Below are positions 1,589 through 40,430 of a stretch of DNA of 64,000 bases, one piece after another (the first letter of the stretch is position 1; each line of letters opens with the position of its first letter). A program made the translations under genes and the position numbers. The notes beneath the pieces were generated by a model that saw only the letters and a list, made by a program, of their open reading frames with translations, was not told the origin of the DNA and ran no database searches. This DNA is from Magallana gigas (taxonomy: Eukaryota). The stretch spans positions 47,864,001-47,928,000 of the forward strand of contig NC_088857.1 in assembly GCF_963853765.1 (NCBI RefSeq). The letters run 5' to 3'.

Positions 1589-3120
1589 TTTACTATGTCA
1601 CAGTCTGTTGTAAAACGCCCAAAGAGGCACCTAATTCAAAGAAACTCTTCCTGACACTTTACACACACAATGTTGATGTAGAGTATACATGGACTTTCGA
1701 TACGACCATGTACACTTTTACTTATAGTTGTAATGTGTCAGTAAGGTTTCAGTGAAACGTTGTACACGCTACACACAAAACGTTATAGTGTAGAGTATCG
1801 GCCATCGTAGATATGGCATGTAAAGATTTTAAGATAGCAGCTATAGATTAACAAATGTATTATGGTAATAAAAAAAACAAGTTTTTACATTACTACAAGG
1901 CATCATTTCTTGAATCTTTTAAAACATGTGCTCTGTACATTTTTTTATATTTGCAGATATTGTTTCCTATATTTAACAACGTGCATGGCTTTCTGGGATT
2001 GTGGGTTTTTTGTTGTTGTTGTTGTTGTTTGGTTGTTTTTTTTTTTTTTTGCTTTAAAAAAAGAACCTCATGAGGAAAATATAATGCCCAAATATTTCAA
2101 CTCATTTAAATTTTCTATAGCTTCTCCATTATGAAACGAACAATTCAAACAAACTGAAAACAGTCTTTTGCAGTAAAAGACTCAGGTGATGAGTAACGGT
2201 GTCACGATTTATAAACTGGAGATAACAATCTGATACATATATTGCATATACTTTTACGATTCATGAAACTTTAAGATCTATACGTGAATTGTAGTTTACA
2301 GATTTATCAGTAAAATCTATATGTATATGCATATTGCAAATAAAACAAATATAGTTTCAATCATAACGGTCTGTAAACGATATAGATTAATAAAACCGAT
2401 AAACCTAGCTAGTTTATCGACTGAAACTACATGTATTTTTAGCTCTTTTTTGTGAATTTGGCGTGCCAAGGTTGTCAGTTACTGTTATTTTTTTTTCTTC
2501 GAAATTACATCAAATTGATGATCAATATGTGACATCTGTAATAACTTTAGTTCTCTGTTGTTTAAATTTTGTATAGAAGAGTATATATATCTATAAAGAA
2601 CACCAGTAAGTTAAAATGAATCACGTGGTTAAGGATAACACATACATGTATACATGTATTCTGTTATATATCGATTTAATTATATAATACTTTGTTAAAT
2701 TATTGGTCGCCACCTGAAAAATACGAATTAAAATGGTAACGTTTTAAAAATTACGACTATTGCCTTGTTAATTATTTCCCAATAGAATTGGAGGTTGTTA
2801 TAATTAACTTTTCTATGATAGAATAAAACGTTAGACAAAGGCCTATTTTAGTTGTATGAGCACCCCTCCATACAATAGCGCTGTCATTCCTCATTTCAAA
2901 ATAAATGCTCCTCCTTGTGGACTTTGAACTCGACAGTTTAGAGAAATTTAAGTCGAAGAAAAAAATCGTTTCCCATTTTCTGATTTCTTTAATAATAAGT
3001 AGATCGATTAATTAAGAATGTATCTTCTAGGAAAATAATTAACGACTATTCAATTCCATACGACATCAAGTTTAATGCGGTTAAAAACGGTGTAAAAACT
3101 AGATTTTTCCACTCTGGAAT

Positions 3121-3137
3121 CCAATGGATCACGTGAC
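3121..3137 (+). promoter_or_regulatory. Putative promoter of PDK exon 1a: CCAAT box plus CACGTG E-box (TCACGTGAC)
   Basis: CCAAT at 3121-3125 and CACGTG at 3130-3135, about 80-90 bp upstream of the exon 1a ATG. Motif match only. Confidence 0.35.
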
Positions 3138-3214
3138 TTCTTGATCGGGGTCATGACATGTTGGTTTATTCTTCGTTCATTTTCATTGAGGAAAGCTTGT
3201 GAGACGGCATTAAT

Positions 3215-3317
3215 ATGATGATGAAGTTTCGGAAATTCCGATGTCTACTCCATGCAAGGCATCTTCATTCCAAATATGTGCCTGTGCCGTTGTCAATGCA
3301 ACAGTATTTGGAATTCG
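3215..3317 (+). CDS. PDK: PDK alternative first coding exon 1a (MMMKFRKFRCLLHARHLHSKYVPVPLSMQQYLEF-G), too short for the ORF track
   Basis: Arg/Lys-rich, acid-free presequence followed by YVPVPLSMQQYLEFG, matching the PDK N-terminal motif (human FSPSPLSMKQFLDFG). Phase-1 G|GTAAGT donor is compatible with exon 2. Confidence 0.85.
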
Positions 3318-3566
3318 GTAAGTTTTTATTTATAACCCTTATCTGATTATTATGAAAACACAGCTGGTTGAGACGTTCTATTTAGGTCGTTATAGGAACA
3401 ACGATTCTTGAATGAGAGTAGGATTGTGTTTATTTGGATTTTTATTTCTGTTTTGTTCTCTGTATCAATCTGAATCTTGATTGCGAAACAAAGGAGAAGT
3501 TGCATCGCATCGGCGAAATAAAATTGTTAACCTCAGTAGTGACGCCGGGAGGTGTGTCCTAAAAAG

Positions 3567-3608
3567 CCAATCGCATGCTTTATTCGGTTTATTTTCTCCA
3601 TGACGTAA
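3567..3608 (+). promoter_or_regulatory. Putative second promoter (for PDK exon 1b): CCAAT plus TGACGTAA (CRE/ATF-like)
   Basis: CCAAT at 3567-3571 and TGACGTAA at 3601-3608 in a CpG-richer patch between the two first exons. Motif match only. Confidence 0.3.
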
Positions 3609-4028
3609 TAGCTTGCAGTGGACTGGGGAAATTTTCAAAAAACCTATTGAACATTTCATGTTCTTCTGAAGGACGAGTGTCCAAGAACCAGTACAACTTT
3701 GGGTATCAATAAGATCTGGCGATGACCGGTTTTTTACTGACCGGAATAGACGAATGTTTACACACAGCAATGAAATATTGTAAAATAATTCAGGTATACA
3801 CATGTAGATAATGATTAAATTTGGGAAAGTTCTATAAGAACAAATAACTGATATACAAGATATGAAAAAAAAGAAAGAAGAAGAATACGACAGTCGTTGA
3901 ATCCACGCACCCATTGCTGTCATTAGCCGTGTCGTATATTTGTTATTGTTTGGCCTTCAGTCAAGCGAGACGCTAAACAAATCTAATATTAACTGTGCAT
4001 GTTTATACTGCATAAGAATAGTGTAGTA

Positions 4029-4149
4029 ATGTTAAGAGCAGGAGTTTTTAGGAAAATATTTGGAGGGGTCAGGTGGATGAGCCATGTTGGGTCATCCAAA
4101 CCCATGTACAGACCATCTCCTATGTCTCTCTCTGAACTCCTGCACTTTG
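4029..4149 (+). CDS. PDK: PDK alternative first coding exon 1b (MLRAGVFRKIFGGVRWMSHVGSSKPMYRPSPMSLSELLHF-G)
   Basis: Mitochondrial-presequence-like N-terminus plus YRPSPMSLSELLHFG motif. Phase-1 G|GTGAGT donor. Confidence 0.85.
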
Positions 4150-4544
4150 GTGAGTTTTACAGCTGTTTTGGGCTGTTTTGTTAATCTATGCATTTTTTGC
4201 ACACGTTTATTTCGAAAGTATTGTTGAGGCATCTGTTCACCAATCCACGTTGGCTGTTTTCTGTTTTATGAAGCCCAATTTGTTACTATTAAGGCAATAT
4301 TTTTTTTCAGTTTTATGTCCATGCAGAGCATGATTGCTTTTGATTTAAATTGTAAAAATTATTTATAGATAGAAAATGTTAATGCTATATCAATACAAGT
4401 ATAATAAAAATAAAATGAAAGTAGAAAAATGTACTGCATTATGCATCAGAATTATTCAAGTTCTTAAAGTATAAAAGTTCCATACACTACATGTACCATA
4501 TCATAGATCAGCTGTCAGTTTATTGAAATGATAAATATAAATGA

Positions 4545-4600
4545 TGGATCAGACTGGGATTGAACCTGGTCCCCTAAAATCTCTAGACTAGTCAGTGCTA
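4545..4600 (-). mobile_element. tRNA-derived SINE-like fragment
   Basis: Minus strand contains GGTTCAATCCCAGTCTGATCCA, a B-box/T-arm-like sequence. Not a complete cloverleaf. Confidence 0.3.
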
Positions 4601-4873
4601 GGTGCGCCTGTACTAGCAGCACTGTCTGCTCATAAGCGATAAGTTCATCTTGGCCATCTCAAATTGGAACTTAACATTAATCCCATTTTATCCCTTTCTT
4701 GAAATATTGAACTGAGACAATGATCACATAGCATTGTTATTTATTGCAGACTCATTAAACTGAGAGAAGTTTGATGTTATCAAGTAATGACCATCAAGAT
4801 ATTGATCGACTAGTAAGACTACAGTGTAAGATTTTCCTTAATCATGTTAATGTTTTCATAATAACACTTGCAG

Positions 4874-5012
4874 GGCAAAAGAAGTGTGAGAGGAAATCTT
4901 TTCAATTCTTGAACGATGAGATCCCTATCCGATTGGCCCACATTATGAGGGAGTTTGAAGATCTCCCAAAGGAACTACTGACCATGAAATCGGTTAAGCT
5001 TGTACGTAGCTG
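4874..5012 (+). CDS. PDK: PDK exon 2 (GQKKCERKSFQFLNDEIPIRLAHIMREFEDLPKELLTMKSVKLVRSW)
   Basis: ttgcag acceptor, GTAAGT donor. Matches PDK '[21 protein letters not shown]...SVQLVQSW'. Confidence 0.95.
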
Positions 5013-6826
5013 GTAAGTTGTCTATTATTCAGCCCTAGGACAACTGAGATAGCTGGTGTCATTGTAAAAATATGGGTACATGTACTTGTTATACTCGTTC
5101 AAATTTATAAAGTTTCTTATTCAGGTACTAAGCTGGCAAGTTATTCACACTGGACGCTGATATAGAGTGTCATTGTAAAATGTAAATATACTTGAATTAA
5201 CTGGTAAATAAGTATGATGGGTAACGACCTAAAAACTAATACGAGTTGAATAAACTTGGCAAAACCCCTAGAATTTGTTGTTTTGCCAAGTAAAGGTATC
5301 CTAGCTATCTGGATGTATCAGATGTACAAGACATGCAAGTACAGCAATGGAAGGGGCATTGTAAGAGCAACTCTATGTTTTGACGAGTTCATCTGTCACA
5401 ATATAAAGATACCTCAAATCTGTTTACCCATCACAAAATAAGTATACCTCAAATCTGTTTTGTTCTTCAATAAGTACTATATTTACATTTGAGAAAAGAT
5501 TTTGATAAGTAAAAAGTTTATGATATTAGTTAATAGACTTTGTAATTTAATTATGGTAATTTTAGATTTGACAGTGCTTTGTTAAAAATAAACTTTACAC
5601 TGAACTTGAGCATTATACTAGTACACACATATTCAACAAGAACATATTACTCTATGTATACGCCAGCACTGTAAACAGATTCTTGTAAACATGCTGATTC
5701 TGAAGCGTAGGCAGGTACGATAACAAACACTGCTACATATCTCAGCCTTATCATGATTTTCCTTGCCACGTTTTATTTTTAGAAAATGTGAGAAGAAAAT
5801 GTAAGGGTAAAAAAAGAAAATTGAGCTAAATCTTTAAAAACATTTTTCACTCAGCCTCAATTAACATCAAATTTTTTGGAGAGATAATAAGACTGCATGA
5901 TTGAAAAATGGCACACCAGTAATTTTTTTCTTGAAATGCATACATCTGATACATGCTCACACAGACAGTTGTCAAGAAATTTTTGGGCTGTATTTGTGTG
6001 GTCACTGATTGGTCTTGTATGAAGATTGAAGATACTTTAATTTTACAAAATATCAAGAAAAACGCACACACTCTCTAAACTTATAGTACCGGTATATACA
6101 ATTCCACTTTTAAGTAAAGTTTGACTAGGGGAAAGATTATTCTGATAAAAAAATTAAGTTACAAGAATTATGGATGGAAATTCTTCCTTTTCATTATCAT
6201 TCGTTAATGCATAGTATTGACAAAGGCATGCGTTGCATAATTTGAATGTCACATTGAGTTTATTTGGCAAGCTTTCAATTCTTACATGTTTCTTAAATAA
6301 CTAGCTCTGGTACATTTGTTATTCAGTGCTCGTTTGGTCAAAATTGATTCTCTCCTGCGTGAGCAAGAATATTGATTTTTCTTTATTGGTATTCATGTAA
6401 ACTTGAATTTAAATTGTATAATATAATTATGCAATGTGTGTTTTTTGTTCTTAAACTTTGAGAAGTATCGAAACTGTTCTCATCTAGCTTGTACTAATTT
6501 CTCCTTTATAATGCAAAATATCTCATTACCTCTGAACAATTTATAAAGAAAAGACTTGTTTCAGTTGTGCTTTATTATTCTGATTTAATTAAGATAAGGA
6601 TCAAATACAATAAAATTTGATTCAATAAGGGTTTTTTTGTGTTAAACATAAGATGTACTTTAGAAAATGCATAAACAGACTTGAACCTATTGGATTATTT
6701 CTTTTTTGGTAAATTTGATTAAAATGCTGAAAGTTAGGTCTTTTGTTGCACATACCAGTACATTACATGTATATAAGGAGATGAATGAAGCAACTCTATA
6801 TAAACCTATTGGAGATTTCTTTGTAG

Positions 6827-6898
6827 GTATGACTTGAGCTTCAAAGAAGTACAAGCATTTCAAGACAAGGACCCTGATGATAAAAAAGTCTTAACAGA
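6827..6898 (+). CDS. PDK: PDK exon 3 (YDLSFKEVQAFQDKDPDDKKVLTD)
   Basis: ttgtag acceptor, GTAAGC donor. Phase 2-2 fits both neighbours. Confidence 0.9.
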
Positions 6899-7279: not shown

Positions 7280-7343
7280 TTTCTCAAAAACCATCCAAGA
7301 CATTCTAAATCGTCATTCCTATGTAGTGGAAACAATGGCTCAG
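7280..7343 (+). CDS. PDK: PDK exon 4 (FSKTIQDILNRHSYVVETMAQ)
   Basis: ttacag acceptor, CAG|GTAAAC donor. Conserved RH...TMAQ. Confidence 0.95.
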
Positions 7344-7959: not shown

Positions 7960-8438
7960 ATGCAATATCTCACACAGTTAAATGCTTAAATCCCATACAC
8001 ATATTTCATTGTATTGATGAATCATTTATGGTTGCTTGTAATACAAACCTGGACATCCTATGCCATTATTTCATTCATTATTTGTTATAATCATGATATT
8101 ATTTTCTTTTAAAGTATGCAATATCTCACACAGTTAAATGCTTAAATCCAATACATATATTTCATTGTATTGATGAATCATTTATGGTTGCTTGTAATAC
8201 AAGCCTGGACATCCTATGCCATTATTTCATTCATTATTTGTTATAATCATGATATTATTTTGTTTTAAAGTATGCAATATCTTGCACAGTTAAATGCATA
8301 AATCCCAAATATATATTTCATTGTATTGATGAATCATTTTGCATATGGTTGCGTGTAATTCAAATCTGGACATCCTAGGTAATTTAATATTTCATGCATT
8401 ATTTGTTATAATTATGATATTATTCTGTTTTAAAGTAT
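7960..8438. repeat. Intronic tandem repeat, three copies of about 156 bp
   Basis: ATGCAATATCT unit starts at 7960, 8116 and 8272. Confidence 0.9.
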
Positions 8439-8974: not shown

Positions 8975-9095
8975 GGTGTTATAGAAATGGAGGATACTTA
9001 TGGAATGGATGATAAAATTTCAGAGAGGATACAGTATTTCTTGGACAGATTTTACATGAACCGAATCAGTATACGCATGCTTCTAACTCAGCATG
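8975..9095 (+). CDS. PDK: PDK exon 5 ([40 protein letters not shown])
   Basis: Hallmark [17 protein letters not shown] motif. AG/GT boundaries. Confidence 0.97.
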
Positions 9096-9346: not shown

Positions 9347-9430
9347 CTGCATTGTTTGGAAACATTTCAAACCATCCTCGACGTATAGGGCATATTGATC
9401 CCAACTGTGATGTCATAGAATGTGTGTCAA
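9347..9430 (+). CDS. PDK: PDK exon 6 (ALFGNISNHPRRIGHIDPNCDVIECVS)
   Basis: IGxIDPNC motif. ctttag acceptor, GTAAGT donor. Confidence 0.95.
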
Positions 9431-9728: not shown

Positions 9729-9806
9729 ATGCTTTCAAAGCGGCAAGACATATCTGTGAACATTATCACATGCAGGCACCAGATCTGGACATTGTCACAG
9801 CTGAAG
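9729..9806 (+). CDS. PDK: PDK exon 7 (AFKAARHICEHYHMQAPDLDIVTAE)
   Basis: A(R)xLC..Y...P motif. ttgcag acceptor, GTATAC donor. Phase 1-1. Confidence 0.93.
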
Positions 9807-10158
9807 GTATACCACTCCTCAAAACATTTCTCTCTATGTATTATAAACTTATAGACTGAGGTTAAATGTCCCCAAAGACTGTATGTCAAGGGTGACAATA
9901 GTTTTGATTCGCTATGGGCAAAAAAAGCATAGTAAATATTTCACGTTACCTAGGTTAATTAGCAAGTTTATTTGTCATAATTTAACATAGTAAAAATGCA
10001 CAAGTACATTATAATAAACATGTTTAGATCTTTAATTAGTTTCTAGAAAAAAGAGATTTTTTTAATATTTTTTTTTCTTTGAGAATGTTTGAATGTTTTA
10101 ATTTTGTTTGTAAAACTGGTACACTGCTTAGTAGTTTTTGAATATTTTGATATTCCAG

Positions 10159-10226
10159 GTTCCAAAATCGTTGACTTTGTATATGTACCCAGTCATATAG
10201 AACATATATTATTTGAAGTTTTTAAG
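10159..10226 (+). CDS. PDK: PDK exon 8 (SKIVDFVYVPSHIEHILFEVFK)
   Basis: YVPSH...FE.FK, start of the N-box. AG/GT boundaries. Confidence 0.95.
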
Positions 10227-10366: not shown

Positions 10367-10465
10367 AATGCCATGAGAGCTGTTGTAGAGTTTCACAGAG
10401 ACAAAATGGAGCTGCCAAAACTAAAGATTATTGTAGCAAAAGGACAGCAAGATCTTACTATCAAG
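10367..10465 (+). CDS. PDK: PDK exon 9 (NAMRAVVEFHRDKMELPKLKIIVAKGQQDLTIK)
   Basis: GHKL N-box KNAMRA. cttcag acceptor, AAG|GTATTT donor. Confidence 0.95.
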
Positions 10466-10809
10466 GTATTTCAAAATTCTTAAACAGAGAAAACAACTAC
10501 TGATATTTCCTCACTTAATGCCTGAAATGTTTATGTTCAATCCAGATGAACTTAATGAAAAATGTTTGTATTTTATTATATGTGAAAAATGAAGCAGTAG
10601 GATCCAATAACTGAGGATCCATTAAATCATCCTAAAAATTGTGATATGTAGATGGTTTAGCTTCATGATTCTGTGTGAGAAATGAATTGTTATGGTTCTG
10701 TATGATATAGAAGCATGGTTTTTTTCATGGATCTGTGAGATATCTAAATACTTTTTAATCCACAGTTCTAAGTTATATGTCAAAAGGGGTTGATTCCAAT
10801 TTTAGTTTG

Positions 10810-11081
10810 TTACATGAATGGTTATGATATATGATACACTTTTCTGTGTGATTTATGAATGGTTTTGATACACTTTTCTGTGTGATATAAGCATTGTTTT
10901 GATACATGGTTCTTTGTGATACATGGTTTTGAAAACTGTTCTGTGTTGTGTATGGTTTTGATACAATTTTCTGTGTGATTTATGAATGGTTTTGATACAC
11001 TTTTCTGTGTGATATATATGCATTGTTTTGATACATGGTTCTCTGTGATACATGGTTTTGATACACTGTTCTGTGTTGTAG
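10810..11081. repeat. Degenerate intronic minisatellite (GGTTTTGATACAC-TTTTCTGTGTGAT motifs; higher-order repeat of about 120 bp)
   Basis: Repeated ggttttgatac and ctgtgtgat units running directly into the exon 10 acceptor. Confidence 0.85.
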
Positions 11082-11189
11082 CTGTGTGATCAAGGAGGAG
11101 GAGTTCCGTACAAGGTTCAAGACAAGCTGTTCCAGTACATGTACTCTACCGCGCCCCGCCCCCAGTACACAGGTCACGACTCACCACTG
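11082..11189 (+). CDS. PDK: PDK exon 10 (LCDQGGGVPYKVQDKLFQYMYSTAPRPQYTGHDSPL)
   Basis: G1 box DxGGG and YMYSTAP.P. CTG|GTAAGT donor. Confidence 0.97.
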
Positions 11190-11683: not shown

Positions 11684-13039
11684 TGAACTACTTTATTTCA
11701 TATACCAAAGTTAGAGACAATCTTGATTTACAATCCAAACTATCACTTTCTCTAAATAGTTGGCAGTGGACAGAAATTTGATATACCAAATTCAAATGAA
11801 TCAACTATAGAAAGGTAATACCTGACATTGTAATCTCAAAATCCTTGACACATTAATGTATGTCTCTGTCACACAGTGAATTTAGCATAATGACATAAGT
11901 GACCTGGCAAATACAAGCACTTTCATGGGAAATTGGATACTTTTGAACTGTTCATCTTCTGAATATTACATTATTAATTTTTTTGCTGAACTACGCAATC
12001 AAATTGATATTGAACCGGGAGCAGGTCTATTTTGGGGCTAACAAAATTAATTGTTATTCCAAATTTTGTAAGTTCATGAAAATATGTTGATAAGTTCTCT
12101 TAAAGAGATGAAAATGTTGTATATAAATCATATATTAATTCAGTTGTCCTATTTAACAGCTAGGCTACACAATTTTGACATTGCATAAAGTGTTTGGGAA
12201 TATATCAAAATATTATATACATTTGAAAATATATAAATGTGCTTTACACTGCATTTTAATTAATTGACATCTTTTGTTAGAGCAATTTTCTGAAATTTGA
12301 TGATAGAAAATTTAAACTGAACTTGGAAAGATAAAATCATAACCTTTGTTCAATGTGGCATTTTATGCTTGTTAAACTGTCTATAAATACCAGATTATGA
12401 ACTGTTCTAGCTAAGTTACTGGGTATGCTTCAAAGACAAAGAATGTGTTAAATAAAAAAGTAAAAAGCATTCGTGTATAGAATTTTAATAAAATGCATGT
12501 GGTCTGAATGTTGCTGCATTTTGAGCAGCTGCCATTGCATTGTCATTAATTGGTGAGCATGACGGCTACCAAGCAAGTTATGTCATTGATAGAGTCCATG
12601 TGTCCAACACTGTCATGTGTAACAGTTGCTATAGTACACACAATGCACGCCCACAAAATGTTTGGTCCACAGTCAGGGTACGTCTTTAGGGGAAGGGGTA
12701 GAGCACTCTGTCTGTCTGTTAGATCTTGGTTTCTGTCCTTTTGTCTGAGTTATGTAACCTTGTTGGTTTGTTAGGTCCCACTAAGGTCCACTTCATCAAT
12801 AGTCAGATGTTCCTTGATAGCTGAAATAAAACCTGTAGTATGCATTAGTAGAATGGATTTAGTTTTTCAAATAAGTAGATTTATATTATAAGTGGACAGA
12901 CTAGTTATCATTTTATGAATTATTTCTGTTGAATATAGATTGTCTTGTTTTATAGGCTAGATATTGCCCCATATATTTCAAGTGGACAGACTAGTTTGGC
13001 TTTATCAATAATTATAATTGTTAATTGTCTTCTTTAGGG

Positions 13040-13226: not shown

Positions 13227-13283
13227 GTAGGCTATAAGGATATAGACCGATTTGCACATGATAATGGACCAGCAAGCTTAATG
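13227..13283 (+). CDS. Candidate 57-nt in-frame cassette exon of PDK (VGYKDIDRFAHDNGPASLM)
   Basis: Pyrimidine-rich ttatag acceptor and ATG|GTAAAT donor. Phase 0-0, no stop codon, fits between exons 10 and 11. Confidence 0.4.
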
Positions 13284-15584: not shown

Positions 15585-15698
15585 GCTGGGTATGGGTATG
15601 GACTTCCTTTGTCCCGTCTATATGCCCGGTACTTCCAGGGGGATCTAGTGGTCAGCTCAATGGAAGGCTACGGGACAGATGTCTACCTGTACCTCAAG
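15585..15698 (+). CDS. PDK: PDK exon 11 ([38 protein letters not shown])
   Basis: G2 box [17 protein letters not shown]. ttgtag acceptor, AAG|GTGAGT donor. Confidence 0.98.
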
Positions 15699-15924: not shown

Positions 15925-16116
15925 GTTAATTCATCAGAGGCTAATGAATGTTTACCTATTTACAACACAACTACCTCAAGAATGTATGAGGCAGAAAAAG
16001 TTGTTTCCGATTGGTCAAGCAGCACCACTTGGAACCAATCAATTCGCACGTACTGTACAGCAGTGAAATCAAAGCAACCAATGATAACAGACAAGAATAA
16101 TATATCAATCCAATGA
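15925..16116 (+). CDS. PDK: PDK exon 12, terminal (VNSSEANECLPIYNTTTSRMYEAEKVVSDWSSS...SIQ*). Full protein 419 aa via exon 1b, or 413 aa via exon 1a
   Basis: E.LPIYN and the conserved C-terminal DW motif. TGA at 16114-16116. Exon lengths sum in frame (1260 nt via exon 1b). Confidence 0.92.
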   Translation, partial: VNSSEANECLPIYNTTTSRMYEAEKVVSDWSSSTTWNQSIRTYCTAVKSKQPMITDKNNISIQ

Positions 16117-18704
16117 TATGTTTGATATATTATAATATGTGATGATGTTTAACCTCAATGAAGACAACTCTTGAGTATGTTGTACAGTTTGCCAAATTCA
16201 GAATTTATCACTAGTACATGTAAATGTGTTTGTTCAATAGTATGACCATGACCTTGCTCTTGGAGCAGTATCTGTATTAAATTAATCTGAGATTTAAAAT
16301 GATACTGTACATTAAAACATAAAACATATCTAGTCATCCTATCCTATCTGTCACAAAAAGCCCAATAAAACGTTGTAATGAAGTGTTGACAATTCCATTA
16401 GAGAAGCAAACTACACTATAGATTGGTATATGTTTTGCAGATAGATACTTGTATATATACATATAGAATGATTGTTAAGCTGCCAATGACTATTTGGACA
16501 AATAGTACATATAACTGGTACTATAACAAATGATACTATGTACCTCAGGTATAACTGATGGCTCAGTAACAGGTGCCATACATGTTTCTCTGGGTGCATA
16601 CATTGGATGCTTATATCTACTACACAAAATGTGTTGTGTAATGGTGTCCTTTATATTTTGTTTGTGTAATTAATTTCATGCCATATCCCTTTCATTTTGT
16701 CTATATTTTGAGTTCTGTTATTTATTGATGTTAACAAGGAGAGGTCAGCTTTGTTGATAAATTATATTGTTTTTATGATGTTTATTAGATAGATACATGT
16801 ACATGTTCTTGCAAGTTGAAGTCAATCGTGGTAATATATCATTTAAGCTGTTTTTATTATGTCAAGGCAAATCCAGTTTACATTCAATGTGCAAACTTTG
16901 TCAAGAAGGAAATATTTTTATCATGTTTGCGAGAGCCTAATCTTTACTCATGGTATGAGTGAAGTTTCGGACTCTTGCAGTGTATGCTTTATGACTGACA
17001 ATGGTACATACAGAATTGTTGAAAATTAAAGCATTTTGTGTAATTGGCTAGTTAAATGACGCCATTTTCTTGTCCTGCTAGATTTACTTGAAAGGTATTT
17101 TAATTAGATGTTTTATAAAGAAGGCAGTTCTTGTCATGCTAAATAAACAAAGATAGCATGTTATTAAAAAAGGTATTTATGTATAAAACTTTTATTGAAA
17201 TTGTTATTGTGTTTCAAATGGTGCATTGCTTGAAGAAAGTAGTTGTTACCCGATCTCATATATCCTATATTGTAAATGTATTGATGCAGACACATCATGA
17301 GTACATGGCAGTGCAATTCTTCATGTAATAATATTGTAGACACTTTTTCAAAAGAAACATGCTGCTAAATCAGTTATTGTCACAAGTCCTTCAGATAACA
17401 ATAATGTGGAGTATCAAAGGAGCAGACAGTAATTACTAAATTCCTCCTAAAATAGAAGATGATTTATGCTAAAAAAAATTTCTTGTTGCCAGTTTATTTC
17501 ACAATTTCTCCTTCAATTATTGCATTTGTATTTATTTAAGAACAATTCTTCAAAGCATCAAACTAAAAAATCATAACCTATAGTTTTTATTTTTTAATAA
17601 ATGCAGCTATTCATTATGGTTGGAAAAGAAGTTGACTGTCATTTTATATCTAGAAGTTAATGTGTCAATTGGTCTTCGATCAAGTTATTAATGAAATCGT
17701 GTGACTAGTGCGTCCAACTGATGGTGATTTTGCAATCATTTCATTTTAAACCTGAAAGGTATAGAAATAATTTAGTACACATTGTTTGTGTATCTGCTTT
17801 ATCTGATTTTGTTGTTTTTAATTTGATTGTTGATTCTACAGAAATAAATGATATATTAGATTTTTTTACGTTTGTGTTTCCTAGTAATAAATATAGAAAT
17901 CATTAGGTAACATAATCATTTCATTGCACAGTCGCCAGCTGAACAATTTAGGAACTTGTTCAAATTTGTCATCAAATAATTTGCGTTCATACTTCCCTCT
18001 TTGATATTGTTAGAAATGAAATGCATGCCGTTTAAAGAGCTGTTTTCAGTCAAACTGAGATAAGTAGAATGATGAAATAAGGTAATTTTTTATTTAAACC
18101 ACTTAACTATAAGGAAATTGAATTTTATTTATACTTTATCAATAACAGACTGACCCAACATAGGGTATATGCTAAAGAAAATCATTTTTGATCCCTGTCC
18201 CCATAGTTGTAGTACAGTCATCTTACTCATAAAGACTTGATCGTGTGTAATGAAGTGAAAAAACAACGTAACTTATTGTAATCACCGATTTTAAGAGATG
18301 AATACGTTCATCAAATACCCGAGTTTGCTTTATCATATCTTGATAACTGACCGCCTGCAATTGAGCTGTAAAAATAATTTACCATTTCTTCCTGCTTCAT
18401 TGATTAAAACAACATTTCCATAACTTGAGTTATTTACAAGTGTAGCTTCATCTCTTCCGTGATACACGTGTTTGTTTAGTTGTTTTTTTTGTCTGTACAT
18501 GATAACTGTACCCGAGGTGTTAAGCCATGCAATAGGGTAAGTATTCACTGATGAATGCATTTATTAATTTGAACCTTGCTTGATCATAAACCGAGTTTGG
18601 GCTTCTCTTTGTTGGTTAACAAAGGAAATCATTTCCTTTTTTCATCACAGTGATTCATTAGGATTTTTATAATACACTCTATTTCTTGTTTAATAGATGT
18701 CTGA

Positions 18705-21206
18705 ATGCCAGTTTTAAGTATGGATTATTTACTTCCAACATTGATCGTGCTGTATTGGACAATATCAATTGCTCATGGACATAAACAAAAAAGTTGTTCT
18801 TCCGATAAAAGATGCAAATGCATTCAACTTGCTGATCAAACCTGGAAAGCTATTTGCTCGGGTTTAGCCCTATATCAATTCCCAACATTCCAAGAAGATG
18901 TTTCGGAGATAAACCTCAACAATAATTCCATTCGTCATTGGAATGCGACTCGCCAATTTCCATTCTACCTCCGAGAGCTTTCGATGCAGAAAAACACCTT
19001 ATTCTTCTATGGTATTTCAGATCTTTCTTTCATTAAAGATCTTGTCAATCTTAGAGTTTTGGACGTTTCCGATAATGTGGATTATGAACGGGACATGGGA
19101 TACCCTGCAAAAGACTTTCGGCTTCTAAAAGATCTGACAGCACTGTACATTGATGGACTAAGGCTTGGAAATTTCAATGCCAACGAATGGAATTTAACTA
19201 GTTTAACCAATCTTACCATTGTTGACCATTGCTTCTTTGTTAGACTCGACGAAGGTTTTTTCAGCGGGTTGCAAAATCTAGAATATTTGGTGATTAATGG
19301 TTGTCCCTTGTTAAAGACAATCGACGAGGGCGTGTTTAGTTGGCTCCCCTTTTTGCATACCTTGGACTTATCCTTCAATGAACACCTGAAGTTCGCTCCC
19401 TTTAAAAACGTGTCTCTCGATTTGCAATCTACCAAAATTCAAATTCTGAAGGCCAAGAAAGTGCATTGTACTTTTGGTATAGGAAATCTCTTGCGAAGAG
19501 ATCATATTATAAACTTTCAGAACACCTCTATCACTGAATTGGACTTGTCAAGCAATCGTATAGAGATGATGGAGAAGGATGTTCCCAAATATCTACCTTC
19601 TAATCTTACAATACTAAACGTGTCGGACAATCAGTTTACCTGGGGACTGTACATGTTATCTTACACGTTTCTGAGAAATCTTCGAATCGCAGATGTCAGT
19701 TTACAGTATTCTTACAGTTTTAAAAATATAAATGAGATGGGCTGTGAAAATTCTTTAGACTGTGGCGACACGACGTCCGAATCGTTATTATTTTCTGAAG
19801 ATGCCTCAAACCACCACCAAGCATCCTTATCCAGAAAAATTAATATTTCTGTGTATGTACCCTGCAAACTCGAAAAGATATTTTTTCATTCAAGCAAGTT
19901 TTATTTCAACATAGGAGAAGTTCATGTCAGGCATAATCATATCAAGGAATATCATGTGAAGAACAATTTTTTCTACAGTTTAATTGGGCCTATGTATGGA
20001 ATGGAATATGCAGAGTATGTAGATTTCTCTAGAAATTTCGTGAAAAACATCTCTAAATCTTTCTTTGACACTTTTCCAAATCTTACGTATTTAGATTTGA
20101 GTAAAAATTTATTAGGAAACTGTTTAAACGAGAACGTTCAATATGACCACTTTAAGTCCCTACAAAAACTCGTAGAAATAAGACTTTCATCGAACGAAAT
20201 ATCAACGATTCCGAGCAAACTACTTTCAAATGCTGTCTCTTTGGAGATATTGGACTTAAGCTACAACCTGATATCAAATTTTACTTTCACATTAAGCGTC
20301 AAGAGTCCACTAAAAATTCTCGATCTATCGAACAACCGACTGCGGGAAATTTCTCGGGAAAATATCAACAGTCTGGAGGACAAACACAGGCGCTTCAACC
20401 TAACATTGGATCTCTCGGGCAATCTGCTAGACTGTACCTGTGACACAATTCCTTTCATACATTGGATCAGAGATTCGGAAATAAATTTCCCAAATAAAAA
20501 CTCTTATCAGTGCAAAATGTCTCACAACAGAAAGCGTACTTTCAGTGAACTAACCAGTATATTGAATGAACTTGGAAATGAATGCTCCTCCAATGCAGCG
20601 TCGATGACAATCGGGATAACGATGACCGTGATGGCAGTTATAATCGTCGGTATAACCACCCTACTTTATAGATTTCGATGGACTATTCGATATTTTTTCT
20701 ATCTTACCAAATGGGAATTTCAAGAAATTATCAGCCCAAAGGAACAGAAAAGACAGAAAGATTTCGAATACTCTGCTTTTGTGACGTACTCGGAGAACGA
20801 TTCGAACTTCGCAGAAATTGAGATGGTGCATCACTTAGAGGAAGAAGGGACACTCAAAATCTGCTTACCAAATCGAGACTTTAGCCCAAATGTTCGTACT
20901 TATGGCAGCATAACCCGTGCTATTCACAATAGCAAGAAAATAATCTGTATCGTTACAGAGGCGTTTCTTGAAGACAGATGGTGTATGTACCAGTTACAGA
21001 TGGCCGAAGAGGACAGGGTACATCGGGAAGACAGCGACTGCATCGTTTTCATTTTCTTTTCACCTCCATCGGAAGAAGATATGAGAGGAGTTGACAGATC
21101 TCTCTTTCTTGTATCACTCATTGAGCAGAGATCGTACGCGCTATTTCCAAAACTTGAAGCGGAGCGCGCTCTATTCTGGCAAAAGTTGGTTGATGTTCTT
21201 AAATGA
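18705..21206 (+). CDS. Toll-like receptor A (833 aa; signal peptide, LRRNT, LRRs, single LRRCT, TM, TIR); divergent member of the cluster
   Basis: Intact ORF with LxxLxLxxN repeats, NLLDCTCDTIPFIHW LRRCT, TM segment around IGITMTVMAVIIVGITTLLY, TIR with FEYSAFVTYS and terminal FW. Acceptor taatag at 18696 and an upstream donor after 18536 suggest a 5' UTR intron. Confidence 0.95.
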   Translation: MPVLSMDYLLPTLIVLYWTISIAHGHKQKSCSSDKRCKCIQLADQTWKAICSGLALYQFPTFQEDVSEINLNNNSIRHWNATRQFPFYLRELSMQKNTLFFYGISDLSFIKDLVNLRVLDVSDNVDYERDMGYPAKDFRLLKDLTALYIDGLRLGNFNANEWNLTSLTNLTIVDHCFFVRLDEGFFSGLQNLEYLVINGCPLLKTIDEGVFSWLPFLHTLDLSFNEHLKFAPFKNVSLDLQSTKIQILKAKKVHCTFGIGNLLRRDHIINFQNTSITELDLSSNRIEMMEKDVPKYLPSNLTILNVSDNQFTWGLYMLSYTFLRNLRIADVSLQYSYSFKNINEMGCENSLDCGDTTSESLLFSEDASNHHQASLSRKINISVYVPCKLEKIFFHSSKFYFNIGEVHVRHNHIKEYHVKNNFFYSLIGPMYGMEYAEYVDFSRNFVKNISKSFFDTFPNLTYLDLSKNLLGNCLNENVQYDHFKSLQKLVEIRLSSNEISTIPSKLLSNAVSLEILDLSYNLISNFTFTLSVKSPLKILDLSNNRLREISRENINSLEDKHRRFNLTLDLSGNLLDCTCDTIPFIHWIRDSEINFPNKNSYQCKMSHNRKRTFSELTSILNELGNECSSNAASMTIGITMTVMAVIIVGITTLLYRFRWTIRYFFYLTKWEFQEIISPKEQKRQKDFEYSAFVTYSENDSNFAEIEMVHHLEEEGTLKICLPNRDFSPNVRTYGSITRAIHNSKKIICIVTEAFLEDRWCMYQLQMAEEDRVHREDSDCIVFIFFSPPSEEDMRGVDRSLFLVSLIEQRSYALFPKLEAERALFWQKLVDVLK

Positions 21207-21210
21207 CAGT

Positions 21211-21365
21211 TTTTCTTTTCACCTCCATCGGAGGAAGATATGAGAGGAGTTGACAGATCTCTCTTTCTTGTATCACTCATTGAGCAGAGATCGTACGCGC
21301 TAATTCCAAAACTTGAAGCGGAGCGCGCCCTATTCTGGCAAAAGTTGGTTGATGTTCTTAAATGA
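21211..21365 (+). repeat. 159-bp-period tandem duplication of the TLR-A 3' coding end (copy of 21052-21206)
   Basis: Second copy differs at 3 visible positions (GAA>GAG, TTT>ATT, GCT>GCC) and ends in its own TGA at 21363-21365. Confidence 0.95.
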
Positions 21366-22476: not shown

Positions 22477-22729
22477 TAGAACCATTATTACAAGGCCTTG
22501 GACTTTCCGTAGGACGTAGCTATCATTTCTTGCATCAAAACATGTTAAAAATGATGCTGGATTCAAGTGAAATATGCACCGATTGCGTAGTCTTAGCTCA
22601 GAAGCCAGACAAATCGTGTTGATTTCAATGAGCTTTCACTGAGTGGGCAGCAATGAAATAGACAGGCATACGTCACATTGCTGTTTGGCACAACTACCCA
22701 AAGTCCAAGCTCCTGTTATAATGGTTCTA
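22477..22729. mobile_element. MITE with about 30-bp TIRs (TAG...CTA ends; Academ-like, tentative)
   Basis: TAGAACCATTATTACAAGGCCTTGGACTTT versus reverse complement TAGAACCATTATAACAGGAGCTTGGACTTT. Confidence 0.65.
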
Positions 22730-23112
22730 ATGGAACTGGTATATAAACTCAAATTTCCAACAAATTAAGAGTTCCACCAATCTTGTTCAATTTGACATTT
22801 CTGATGTTAATGATCCCTTTGAAATTTTAATACCAACTCATAATCCAATTCTCAAGGCTTTTTGTCCATATAAGAAGCCTTCCTTTCCATACCAAGATTT
22901 TAAAAAATTGTCGGAGTATTTGCTATTTCATGATGATAACAATGTCCTAACAAAGGTGTGTTTTGTCAAATCTTGTAAATGCTAGTAGATCAACGGCTTA
23001 TGAATAAAAGGATTTCCTTTCATTGCATATAAGTTTCAAATTATCTTACGTAATGTATTTTCAGATCAACATCAAGAATCCATCATAATAAACATACAAC
23101 GACGTCAGTGAA

Positions 23113-37720: not shown

Positions 37721-37853
37721 AGGTTATGATTATTATTGTCTACATTTGCTACCTTCTTTCATTTACCATGTCTTTTTTTTATTTTTAGATCATGGAAAAT
37801 ATTGCACAGAAATAATTTTTACAAGAATAAAGAAAAATTAGTTCGAGTGACAA

Positions 37854-40430
37854 ATGGCACACAACATACATTATTTGACAATTTTCGTTTGCATTGTTAA
37901 GTTCTTGAAAGGACCAAAATGTACGAATGAAGAAAAATGTAACTGTACAAAATTACCAAATTTTAAAGAACTGTTTCACATGGACTGTTCCAATAAAGGA
38001 TTGACTGAAATGCCAATTCCTTCCATAGACTTTGAAGTTTATAGCATTGATTTATCTCAAAACAAGTTACGGAACGTTTTAATTACTGAAAATTATTCTA
38101 GGACATTAAAACAATTGAATTTATCTCACAATGCATTAAGAAATCTATCGAATAACAGTTTTAACTGGATTCCATATCTTGAAGTGTTAGATTTGTCATA
38201 TAATAATCTCACATTATCCAATACAAGACTTCCCAATCTGGTATTCCAATATCTGAGTAACCTTAAGGTTCTGAACTTGTCTCACAATGACGTCATTGGT
38301 ACAGACCATTACAATGCAGAAGTATTCCGGCACACTGAATCTCTGGAGACGCTAGTCATTGACGGCCTCCGAAATGGCAACTTTGATTTTACAAAACATG
38401 ACAAAAGGTGTGATCGTCCACATAAAGATACAAGCATATATTTGAAAAAGTTGACAACACTTGTAGTTTCAGGACGTAGAGAACGCAAAAAATGTTTGGT
38501 AAAACATCTGTCCGCCGACTTTTTTCAGAGTGTCTTTAATCTAAAGTATTTAGACATGTCTGCTTGCGCAATCCAATCAGTGGATAAAAAAAGTTTGTTG
38601 CTGTCAGAGCTACAATATTTAGATTTGTCCTACAACGAACATTTATCTTTTAAATCTTTTCAAAATTTGTCTATACCGCAAACTTTGAAAACACTGAAAT
38701 TGGACAAAATTTGTTGCACATTTGGAATTGGTACCTACATCACACAAGATATGGCCGAATTATTCTGGAAGAGTTCAGTAGAATATCTTTCACTTAAAAG
38801 CAATAGACTGGAGACGGCAGTAAGCAATGGGTTTAATTATTTACCTCAAAATCTAACCCGTTTGGATGTATCAGACAACAGACTCACTTTTGGGGCCTAT
38901 GGCTTTCCCATTCCTTTTTTGAAAAAATTGCAAGTTGTGAATATGCAAAATCAATTCTATCCACATTTTAAAGAAAGGTATAACAATTTGGAAGAGTGTA
39001 AAGAAGGCTTCGTGTGCTCCTCTCGTCCAGATGGAAATAACTCTACCTCTGGTTGGAATTTTGCGAGTTACCATTCAAAAGACTTCGTGTTTTACGCACC
39101 TCCCAGCCTGGAAACAATCAATTACTCTAATTCTTCACTAAATACAGTTATCCGTCAGATTAATGTAGACCCGAACAACAGTGTAAAAAACGTCGTTTTA
39201 AGTCATAATTTTTTGGAAACTCTTGAAGGGCCGATTTACGGACTACACAAACTTGAAAAAGTTGATTTTTCCCATAATTATATTTCTTATTTATCACCAG
39301 TTTTCTTTGGAAATGGTTCAACTTTAAAGAACTTGATCTTAAAAAACAACTTATTAGGAAACTGCATGAGCAAACCTAACTTGACATATTTCGGAAACCT
39401 CTGGAATTTAACATTGTTAGATCTTTCATCCAATATAATCCGCTTTGCAGCTCCTGACATTTTTGAAGGTCTAGAATCACTGCGGATATTGAATCTTAGT
39501 TTTAATTTACTGCGAAATGTTTCATTCAGAATGCACCAGATGCCTTCTTTGAGAACATTAGATCTTTCTTTTAATGCACTTTTGCCATTTTCCGACTCTA
39601 CAATTCAAATTCTGGAATCGAGACAACAAACTCGTCAACTGGAAATTATCCTTTCAGGGAACGAATTTCAGTGTACGTGCGACTCTCTTAATTTCCTAAA
39701 GTGGATGCTACGAAACAAAAATACTGTCATTGTAGATTATTCATACCTTTGTCGAAATATGTACCATGCCATCGACAACAATGATGAGTTGGACATGGTA
39801 AGTAAGATGCTAGATAAGAAATGCGACGATTACAAAGAAATCATTGGTATTGTATCTGGACTGTTTATTGTTTTCTTTGCGTTTATTATTGGTGGAATTA
39901 TTCATCGCTACCGGTGGAAACTTCGCTATTTCTATTACATGTCGAAATGTAGCGCTACCATATCACACATATCCTATGGTAGAGTATACGACTATGACGT
40001 ATTTGTTTCTTATGCCGATGAGGAGAAGGATTTTGTCATACAGGAAATTACGTCAGAATTAGAGGAAGCGTCAGATTTGAAACTGTGTCTACATGAGCGA
40101 GATTTTACACTAGGTTTATCAATCGGCGAGAACATAACCAAGGCAATATGTAACAGCAGAAAGGTTTTGTGCGTCGTAACAGAGAACTTTTTGTGCTCTC
40201 AGTGGTGTATGTATGAACTAGAGATGGCCCTCACAGACAACAGGTACTCCAGAGTCGATCAGTCTGTTTTCCTCATCATGTATGGGGGATTGCCGACCGA
40301 TAGCTGTAAAATTCGTTCATCGAAACAACTTACCTCATTAGTAAAGAAGCACGCCTATCTGGAATATCCTAATGATGAGAGTGGTAGAGCTGAGTTCTGG
40401 AATTCACTCAAAATTAAGCTAGGGGAGTAA
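37854..40430 (+). CDS. Toll-like receptor C (858 aa) with a BB-loop Pro->Leu substitution
   Basis: Intact ORF with the same architecture as TLR-B. TIR box 2 reads LCLHERDFTLG. Acceptor atttttag at 37788. Confidence 0.96.
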   Translation: MAHNIHYLTIFVCIVKFLKGPKCTNEEKCNCTKLPNFKELFHMDCSNKGLTEMPIPSIDFEVYSIDLSQNKLRNVLITENYSRTLKQLNLSHNALRNLSNNSFNWIPYLEVLDLSYNNLTLSNTRLPNLVFQYLSNLKVLNLSHNDVIGTDHYNAEVFRHTESLETLVIDGLRNGNFDFTKHDKRCDRPHKDTSIYLKKLTTLVVSGRRERKKCLVKHLSADFFQSVFNLKYLDMSACAIQSVDKKSLLLSELQYLDLSYNEHLSFKSFQNLSIPQTLKTLKLDKICCTFGIGTYITQDMAELFWKSSVEYLSLKSNRLETAVSNGFNYLPQNLTRLDVSDNRLTFGAYGFPIPFLKKLQVVNMQNQFYPHFKERYNNLEECKEGFVCSSRPDGNNSTSGWNFASYHSKDFVFYAPPSLETINYSNSSLNTVIRQINVDPNNSVKNVVLSHNFLETLEGPIYGLHKLEKVDFSHNYISYLSPVFFGNGSTLKNLILKNNLLGNCMSKPNLTYFGNLWNLTLLDLSSNIIRFAAPDIFEGLESLRILNLSFNLLRNVSFRMHQMPSLRTLDLSFNALLPFSDSTIQILESRQQTRQLEIILSGNEFQCTCDSLNFLKWMLRNKNTVIVDYSYLCRNMYHAIDNNDELDMVSKMLDKKCDDYKEIIGIVSGLFIVFFAFIIGGIIHRYRWKLRYFYYMSKCSATISHISYGRVYDYDVFVSYADEEKDFVIQEITSELEEASDLKLCLHERDFTLGLSIGENITKAICNSRKVLCVVTENFLCSQWCMYELEMALTDNRYSRVDQSVFLIMYGGLPTDSCKIRSSKQLTSLVKKHAYLEYPNDESGRAEFWNSLKIKLGE

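Follow-up and report, generated by a model that had tools for sequence, protein, structure and literature searches.

The window analyzed here, a stretch of 64,000 nucleotides from the oyster Magallana gigas, contains a gene for pyruvate dehydrogenase kinase (PDK) with two tandem homologous first exons, termed 1a and 1b. Both derive from an ancestral exon 1, and splicing joins either of them to a common exon 2. The two kinases made in this way differ only in the mitochondrial presequence and in the first ~20 mature residues of the N-terminal regulatory domain. The arrangement, in which a canonical type A exon is followed by a type B exon and then by exon 2, is common to bivalves, gastropods and cephalopods, as observed in five genomes and, for two cephalopods, at the isoform level.

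A splice-aware reconstruction of the oyster gene gave 12 coding exons between window positions 3215 and 16116 on the plus strand, with GT..AG borders at all introns. The spliced products have 413 amino acids (aa) with exon 1a and 419 aa with exon 1b, counted from the ATG at 4029 (429 aa from the ATG at 3999). The full PF10436 profile (BCDHK_Adom3, positions 1-160) was covered with 154.5 bits in the 1a isoform and 153.4 bits in the 1b isoform (cut-off 24), and PF02518 (GHKL ATPase) was matched with 48 bits versus a cut-off of 26.4. The spliced protein contains an N-box (NAMRA), a G1 box (DQGGG) and a G2 box (GYGYGLP). The exon 2 peptide matched human PDK1-4 with E values of 3e-10 to 5e-8, compared with 0.075 for BCKDK. 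A six-frame search of the whole genome with PF10436 returned two loci, the PDK of the window and one on another contig that matched BCKDK (contig C3; 4e-15). Judged by its sequence, the window gene is a PDK and not a BCKDK, a separate BCKDK orthologue lying elsewhere in the genome; since one of the two loci is BCKDK, a single PDK gene was found in the oyster genome. The features of the gene are as follows, all on the plus strand and, where no other source is given, from the gene reconstruction.

3055 to 3214, plus strand: 5' untranslated region (UTR) of exon 1a transcripts; minimum extent, from the contig of RNA run X11, the start possibly lying further upstream
3215 to 3317, plus strand: coding part of exon 1a, type A; ATG, 34 codons and 1 base, GTAAGT donor, phase 1
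3766 to 4028, plus strand: upstream part (5' UTR) of exon 1b transcripts; contigs continuous into the 1b donor
4029 to 4149, plus strand: coding part of exon 1b, divergent type B; ATG, 40 codons and 1 base, GTGAGT donor, phase 1
4874 to 5012, plus strand: exon 2, common to both forms; acceptor AG at 4872-4873
6827 to 6898, plus strand: exon 3
7280 to 7343, plus strand: exon 4
8975 to 9095, plus strand: exon 5
9347 to 9430, plus strand: exon 6
9729 to 9806, plus strand: exon 7
10159 to 10226, plus strand: exon 8
10367 to 10465, plus strand: exon 9, with the N-box NAMRA
11082 to 11189, plus strand: exon 10, with the G1 box DQGGG
13227 to 13283, plus strand: optional cassette exon of 57 nt, encoding the 19 aa VGYKDIDRFAHDNGPASLM; from RefSeq isoforms X1/X2, flanked by an AG acceptor and a GT donor
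15585 to 15698, plus strand: exon 11, with the G2 box GYGYGLP
15925 to 16116, plus strand: exon 12, with the stop codon

Exon 1a is 103 nt long, begins ATGATGATG and ends ...YVPVPLSMQQYLEF plus G, followed by GTAAGT, and exon 1b, with 121 nt, begins with ATG and ends ...YRPSPMSLSELLHF plus G, followed by GTGAGT. Each first exon opens a reading frame at its own ATG, encodes a basic presequence free of acidic residues and a version of the PSPLSMKQFLDFG segment, and is closed by a phase-1 GT donor. The acceptor of exon 2 reads cttgcag/GG, which places the start of this exon at 4874. When either first exon is joined to it, the frame continues as G-QKKCERKSFQFLNDEIPIRLAHIM..., matching residues ~30-74 of human PDK1-4 (E 3e-10). 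Both first exons match positions 1-10 of PF10436: the profile starts at the second proline of P-x-P, 10 residues ahead of the exon boundary, so that the end of each first exon supplies exactly these 10 positions. Across the window's first 20 kb, a scan for the motif together with a donor found only the two sites 1a and 1b, and in four further mollusc PDK loci (39-87 kb) it likewise gave exactly two sites apiece. Two short elements were spotted by eye around these exons and may be due to chance: a CACGTG E-box (ACGTG core) at 3130-3135 (plus strand), inside the 1a 5' UTR, and a CRE/ATF-like TGACGTAA at 3601-3608 (plus strand), between exons 1a and 1b.

Next, Logan contigs of four oyster RNA runs (X1, X6, X11 and X14) from four studies were mapped to window positions 2700-5200. 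The joint 3317>4874 (GT..AG) was present in runs X1, X11 and X6 (three studies), and in run X11 one contig of 405 nt spans 3055-3316 and 4873-5015. The joint 4149>4874 was present in runs X1 and X6 (two studies), where contigs covering 3753-4148 (run X1) and 3766-4151 (run X6) are uninterrupted up to the 1b donor. No 1a>1b joint occurred among the contigs of the four runs. Run X14 yielded unspliced sequence only, and gaps in contig cover prove nothing; contig depth is unreliable and was not used to rank isoform abundance. Run X6 also contained, at a depth of 11, a weak joint 3793>4874 (cag/GTATAC), which, read from the ATG at 3770, leaves the frame and reaches a stop within exon 2. This variant may be a minor non-productive or leader form.

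Database entries reflect both first exons. RefSeq lists four isoforms of oyster PDK, X1 (448 aa), X2 (432), X3 (429) and X4 (413), under the accessions XP_065942034.1, XP_065942035.1, XP_065942036.1 and XP_065942038.1, with an older set XP_011440701-04. The reconstructed 413-aa 1a product is identical to isoform X4. Exon 1b is carried by isoforms X1 and X3, of which X3 starts at the in-frame upstream ATG at 3999 (MFILHKNSVV + MLRAG), and one UniProt entry starts at 4029 (MLRAG). The 19-aa cassette is added in isoforms X1 and X2 relative to X3 and X4, so that two first exons and a cassette in or out make four PDK protein isoforms. The 1b protein cluster has 41 member sequences, some of them derived from Logan transcripts, including full-length products. 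In an earlier RefSeq model, XP_034310432.1 (473 aa), 1a is spliced in frame to an AG acceptor at 4026/4027, two bases 5' of the 1b ATG; this join (..EF-V-MLRAG..) would give both N-terminal segments in tandem, and it is not in the current isoform set. A search of representative sequences with exon 2 gave mainly fragments of unspliced open reading frames (ORFs), and its entry P0001 was rejected as an isoform, as it is only a genomic ORF across exon 2. In P0356, a Logan transcript of 386 aa that groups with Crassostrea virginica entries, MRTEYDVL is joined straight to exon 2 (GQKKCEKKS...), which points to a further 5' exon, without the PSPLS segment, spliced to exon 2 in that oyster. The residues encoded by the cassette at 13227-13283 fall in the ATP-lid region, directly ahead of the G2 box GYGYGLP; at the equivalent intron position, one Mytilus isoform carries five extra residues (CCDNW).

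A literature search found no paper on the oyster PDK isoforms X1-X4, which are automatic models. The 'PDK1' qPCR primers of a 2026 oyster study map to exon 11 (15658) and exon 12 (16014) and would therefore sum the isoforms rather than distinguish them. As RefSeq already lists the transcripts and duplicated alternative first exons are familiar, the oyster gene is not a new kind of system. We found no description elsewhere of this source of PDK isoform diversity in molluscs, of the conservation of the A/B pair in order and sequence type from bivalves to gastropods and cephalopods, or of its swapping named lipoyl-pocket residues.

The preliminary description of this DNA had proposed a duplicated pair of first exons, each with its own ATG and phase-1 GT donor and each replacing the presequence together with the first conserved segment of the kinase. 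Sequence and frame bear this out, the swapped part comprising the first 10 positions of BCDHK_Adom3. The two RNA junctions that it had listed as a check were recovered in three studies (3317>4874) and two studies (4149>4874), and its proposal that one gene makes two PDK forms agrees with the single PDK gene found by the genome search. The exon 2 end that it implied, 5013, is corrected here to 5012.

Binding of L2 is established for the PDK family, and the position of the swapped segment relative to the lipoyl-binding site was derived from published pocket residues. According to PMC7736850 (citing Kato 2007), the lipoamide pocket of human PDK1 is formed by Leu57, Phe65 and Phe78, with contacts from Gln61 and Thr74. 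PMC4813202 describes AZD7545 as stacking on Phe65 of PDK1 and Phe35 of PDK3, and gives the order of L2 affinity as PDK3 > PDK1 ~ PDK2 > PDK4. In an alignment to chain 2q8f_A, five of the five pocket residues named there for PDK1 (L, Q, F, T, F) map at one offset, 29. On that basis L57, Q61 and F65 correspond to the L, the Q and the last F of PSPLSMKQFLDFG, which puts three of the five pocket residues in the swapped exon 1; the equivalents of T74 and F78 are encoded by the shared exon 2. Relative to human PDK1, oyster 1a has the changes S55V, K60Q, F62Y and D64E, and oyster 1b has L57M, M59L, K60S, Q61E, F62L and D64H. Human PDK4 reads SMKQLLDFG in this segment, and Leu62, present in many B exons and in oyster 1b, corresponds to this; Phe62 persists in the B exons of cephalopods and Littorina, so that Leu62 is not universal in type B. 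The hydrophobic pocket residues (PDK1 L57 and F65) are kept in nearly all B exons. The AlphaFold models of the two isoforms agree in a short helix that spans the exon junction and, for 1a, is predicted with moderate confidence.

The N-termini of ~300 PDKs were then compared. The canonical bilaterian type A has a consensus of roughly (L/V)D.YSQ(F/Y)N-PSPLS(M/I)(K/Q)(Q/K)F(I/L)DFG, and type B one of roughly F(E/D)KYA.FN-PSPLSL..(L/F)..EFG. Among the named entries of this set type B is confined to molluscs. Isoforms of one gene, with A and B N-termini on identical downstream sequence, were found in Mytilus spp., a gastropod (probably Haliotis), Littorina saxatilis, Octopus sinensis/vulgaris and Acanthosepion pharaonis. 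Arthropod entries labeled 'isoform X1/X2' were rejected as first-exon variants, their N-termini being identical and the differences lying elsewhere. A region-limited search with a type-B N-terminus gave six candidates from one genus and is uninformative on the distribution of type B. The genomic order was A, B, exon 2 in five of five mollusc loci, each first exon ending in F and G followed by the GT donor in phase 1, and the spacing between A and B was 0.4-2.2 kb across the five genomes:

Window, Magallana gigas: A at 3215, B at 4029, exon 2 at 4874
L005, gastropod (probably Haliotis): A at 10001, B at 12061, exon 2 at 16939
L006, Mytilus-cluster mussel: A at 10001, B at 10505, exon 2 at 16279
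L007, Littorina saxatilis: A at 10001, B at 12321, exon 2 at 22699
L010, Sinanodonta woodiana (GCA_046254885.1): unannotated A at 8140-8244, with ATG and ...PQPVSIQTFVDF plus G, followed by GTAAGT; B annotated 1.8 kb downstream

For Sinanodonta woodiana the annotation lists a B-type protein alone. An upstream A exon was predicted by the rule and then found (...ENYCQFHPQPVSIQTFVDF plus G, followed by GTAAGT). The annotated PDK of this species has an unusually long N-terminal extension, with 97 residues before FG. Variation within genera is limited to the presequences; the mature part does not vary in either exon type, a sign that both are under constraint. The recurrence of the two exon types in bivalves, gastropods and cephalopods gives the conservation that the preliminary description had named as a check. 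Its placement of the swapped segment in the lipoyl/AZD7545 pocket also holds, with PDK1 Leu57, Gln61 and Phe65 lying within it, and the changes it listed in 1b, M>L, Q>E and D/E>H, are M59L, Q61E and D64H, to which L57M, K60S and F62L are added.

Oyster 1b was compared with the type B exons of other molluscs over the last 22 residues of the first exons, with the following mean identities:

A versus A, between species: 58%
B versus B, between species: 54%
A versus B, same species: 41%
A versus B, between species: 39%
Oyster 1a versus type A and versus type B: 42% and 35%
Oyster 1b versus type B and versus type A: 36% and 28%

In a maximum-likelihood tree of 24 columns, 12 of 12 B exons, oyster 1b included, lay on one side of a branch with support 67/86, and 0 of 500 label shuffles were as good. 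Leu occupies human PDK1 position 59 in all 16 of the 16 B exons, again with oyster 1b among them, where type A has S-M or S-I. Glu64 is usual in B exons, Ala50/Lys48 occur in most and Leu62 often; oyster 1b retains Leu59, Leu62, Leu63 and Phe65. Compared with other mollusc A/B pairs, the oyster pair has the same layout, and both of its exons are unusually divergent; relative to other B exons, oyster 1b has Met for Leu at 57, Glu at 61 and His for Glu at 64. A G-x-R-W-x-S motif is common to oyster 1b (..GGVRWMS..) and the type-B presequence of the probable Haliotis (..SGLRWAS..), its Arg standing at -3 relative to a putative processing site. The motif is missing from other B exons and may be a coincidence.

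Taken together, we consider it likely that an ancient duplication of exon 1 produced the pair, that B has its own promoter, that both forms are imported and that the B form differs in how it docks to the E2 lipoyl domain or is activated by it. Exon 1 would have been duplicated once, before bivalves, gastropods and cephalopods split, and B-type mRNAs would start at their own promoter between exons 1a and 1b. Both the A and the B protein would be imported into mitochondria. The B form would keep the hydrophobic core of the pocket (L57, F65) and have a changed rim or changed neighbors at positions 59, 60, 61, 62 and 64, and this changed rim may yield a second PDK with altered lipoyl-domain docking or activation. 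The A and B forms may be expressed under different conditions, as a one-gene counterpart of the vertebrate PDK paralogues.

The points that weigh against this reading concern function, the promoter and the status of oyster 1b, and they are given here with the rival explanations. The 1b N-terminus in the AlphaFold model has a pLDDT below 50, too low for its packing to be judged. The pair might serve expression or targeting only, by means of two promoters and/or presequences, with the differences in the mature segment tolerated and without biochemical effect. The A and B presequences are wholly different and quick to evolve, L57 and F65 are retained in nearly all B exons, and alternative first exons often serve promoter switching. 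However, B-specific mature residues recur across three classes (Leu59 in 16 of 16; Ala50/Lys48 and Glu64 in most), the B-B identity of 54% exceeds the A-B identity of 39-41%, and within a genus the presequences change but the mature segment does not. Together these three observations argue for selection on the B mature sequence, and we judge a role confined to expression or targeting to be unlikely. As to the promoter, the interval between 1a and 1b is contig-covered in all four runs, and for that reason the contigs do not place the 5' end of the 1b RNA; the putative 1b 5' UTR also contains several upstream ATGs, including that at 3999. The coverage of the whole interval in four of four runs, and the mere 0.4-2.2 kb between A and B in five genomes, would fit a single promoter upstream of 1a, the 1a donor being skipped and 1b RNAs arising as long-leader variants by choice of the 5' splice site. 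Ahead of 1b, an RNA of this kind would contain the 1a ATG with a 43-codon ORF that stops at 3346, which should make 1b translation inefficient, and the B reading frame is nonetheless conserved across mollusc classes. Moreover, the depth of the interval was below that of the 1b contig (20 versus 44 in run X1 and 15 versus 55 in run X6, values that are unreliable in themselves). We therefore regard one common promoter as quite improbable.

The status of oyster 1b is affected by its branch in the tree, which has a length of 3.5 compared with a median of 0.17 and marks it as highly divergent, and by a topology test that does not reject an oyster-only duplication (p-AU 0.29). Oyster 1b is without the (E/D)K(Y/F)A motif, reading S-S-K-P at 47-50, and has His in place of Glu64. 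The comparison of 1b included no more distant oyster and so gives no within-oyster constraint, and the 1b joint was not seen in two of the four RNA runs (X11 and X14), with 1b depth below that of 1a, a measure that is unreliable here. The outgroups consist of two genomes: when intron 1 and 10 kb of upstream sequence were scanned, the annelid Owenia fusiformis and the nemertean Tubulanus each showed only the annotated exon 1, with intron position and phase as in molluscs, and a divergent second exon could escape such scans. If oyster 1b were a decaying or lineage-specific copy at the level of noise, and not a functional type-B orthologue, the very long branch, the loss of EKYA and Glu64, the unrejected oyster-only duplication and the lack of 1b in the contigs of runs X11 and X14 would all be accommodated. 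An intact ATG, an open frame, a consensus GTGAGT donor and the correct phase are at odds with decay, as are the junction in two studies and the 41-member cluster with its full-length Logan transcript products. Oyster 1b also keeps Leu59, Leu62, Leu63 and Phe65, groups with the B exons in the best tree and occupies the position that B has in Mytilus. We hold a decaying copy to be very improbable. Its gene position, shared with Mytilus, also a pteriomorph bivalve, tips the balance to orthology, and by these comparisons oyster 1b is very probably orthologous to molluscan type B, of which it would be a divergent member at best.

A more far-reaching version of the duplication reading is doubtful as it stands. 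Here type B would be a 'PDK4-like' kinase with a re-tuned pocket rim and its own stress- or tissue-responsive promoter, arising from an exon-1 duplication in molluscs more than 500 million years ago, a date taken from general knowledge. Switching between A and B might then help to gate the entry of pyruvate into mitochondria during hypoxia, air exposure or starvation in intertidal molluscs, and the unusually fast evolution of the oyster B exon may be adaptive.

PDK switches off the pyruvate dehydrogenase complex, and in vertebrates its physiology depends on four paralogues that differ in lipoyl-domain affinity and inducibility. With one PDK gene in molluscs, the conserved two-exon device is the obvious candidate source of isoform diversity. 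Since the two kinases are identical except for the presequence and ~20 residues, three named pocket residues among them, any difference in L2 docking or activation would be assignable to that segment. Hypoxia and stress studies with primers in exons 11 and 12 may have overlooked an isoform switch. The A/B rule also predicts unannotated exons, as in the Sinanodonta case, and can improve mollusc gene models.

Tandem repeats are present in two PDK introns, with three copies of a 156-bp unit (91% matches) at 7960-8438 in intron 4 and 7.5 copies of a 34-bp unit at 10832-11076 in intron 9. Downstream of PDK lie three large intronless ORFs on the plus strand (18705-21203, 23092-25713 and 37851-40427). 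Two of the three were scanned and have LRR and TIR domains, i.e., those of Toll-like receptors, and the translations of 23092-25713 and 37851-40427 are clearly alike. Directly after the ORF at 18705-21203 there is a short duplicate of its C-terminal end (21207-21362).

The molluscan pair resembles vertebrate PDK1-4 in providing several PDKs that vary in the same N-terminal segment lining the lipoamide pocket. In vertebrates, however, four whole genes differ throughout, whereas in molluscs only exon 1 of one gene is swapped, and both forms have one and the same catalytic core, dimer interface and C-terminal tail. In UGT1A and the clustered protocadherins, tandem copies of a first exon, each presumably with a promoter of its own, are joined to common downstream exons; these genes share with the PDK pair a variable N-terminal part on a constant remainder. 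Unlike these systems, the PDK pair consists of two copies only, and its variable part is the presequence with ~20 pocket residues and not a whole domain.

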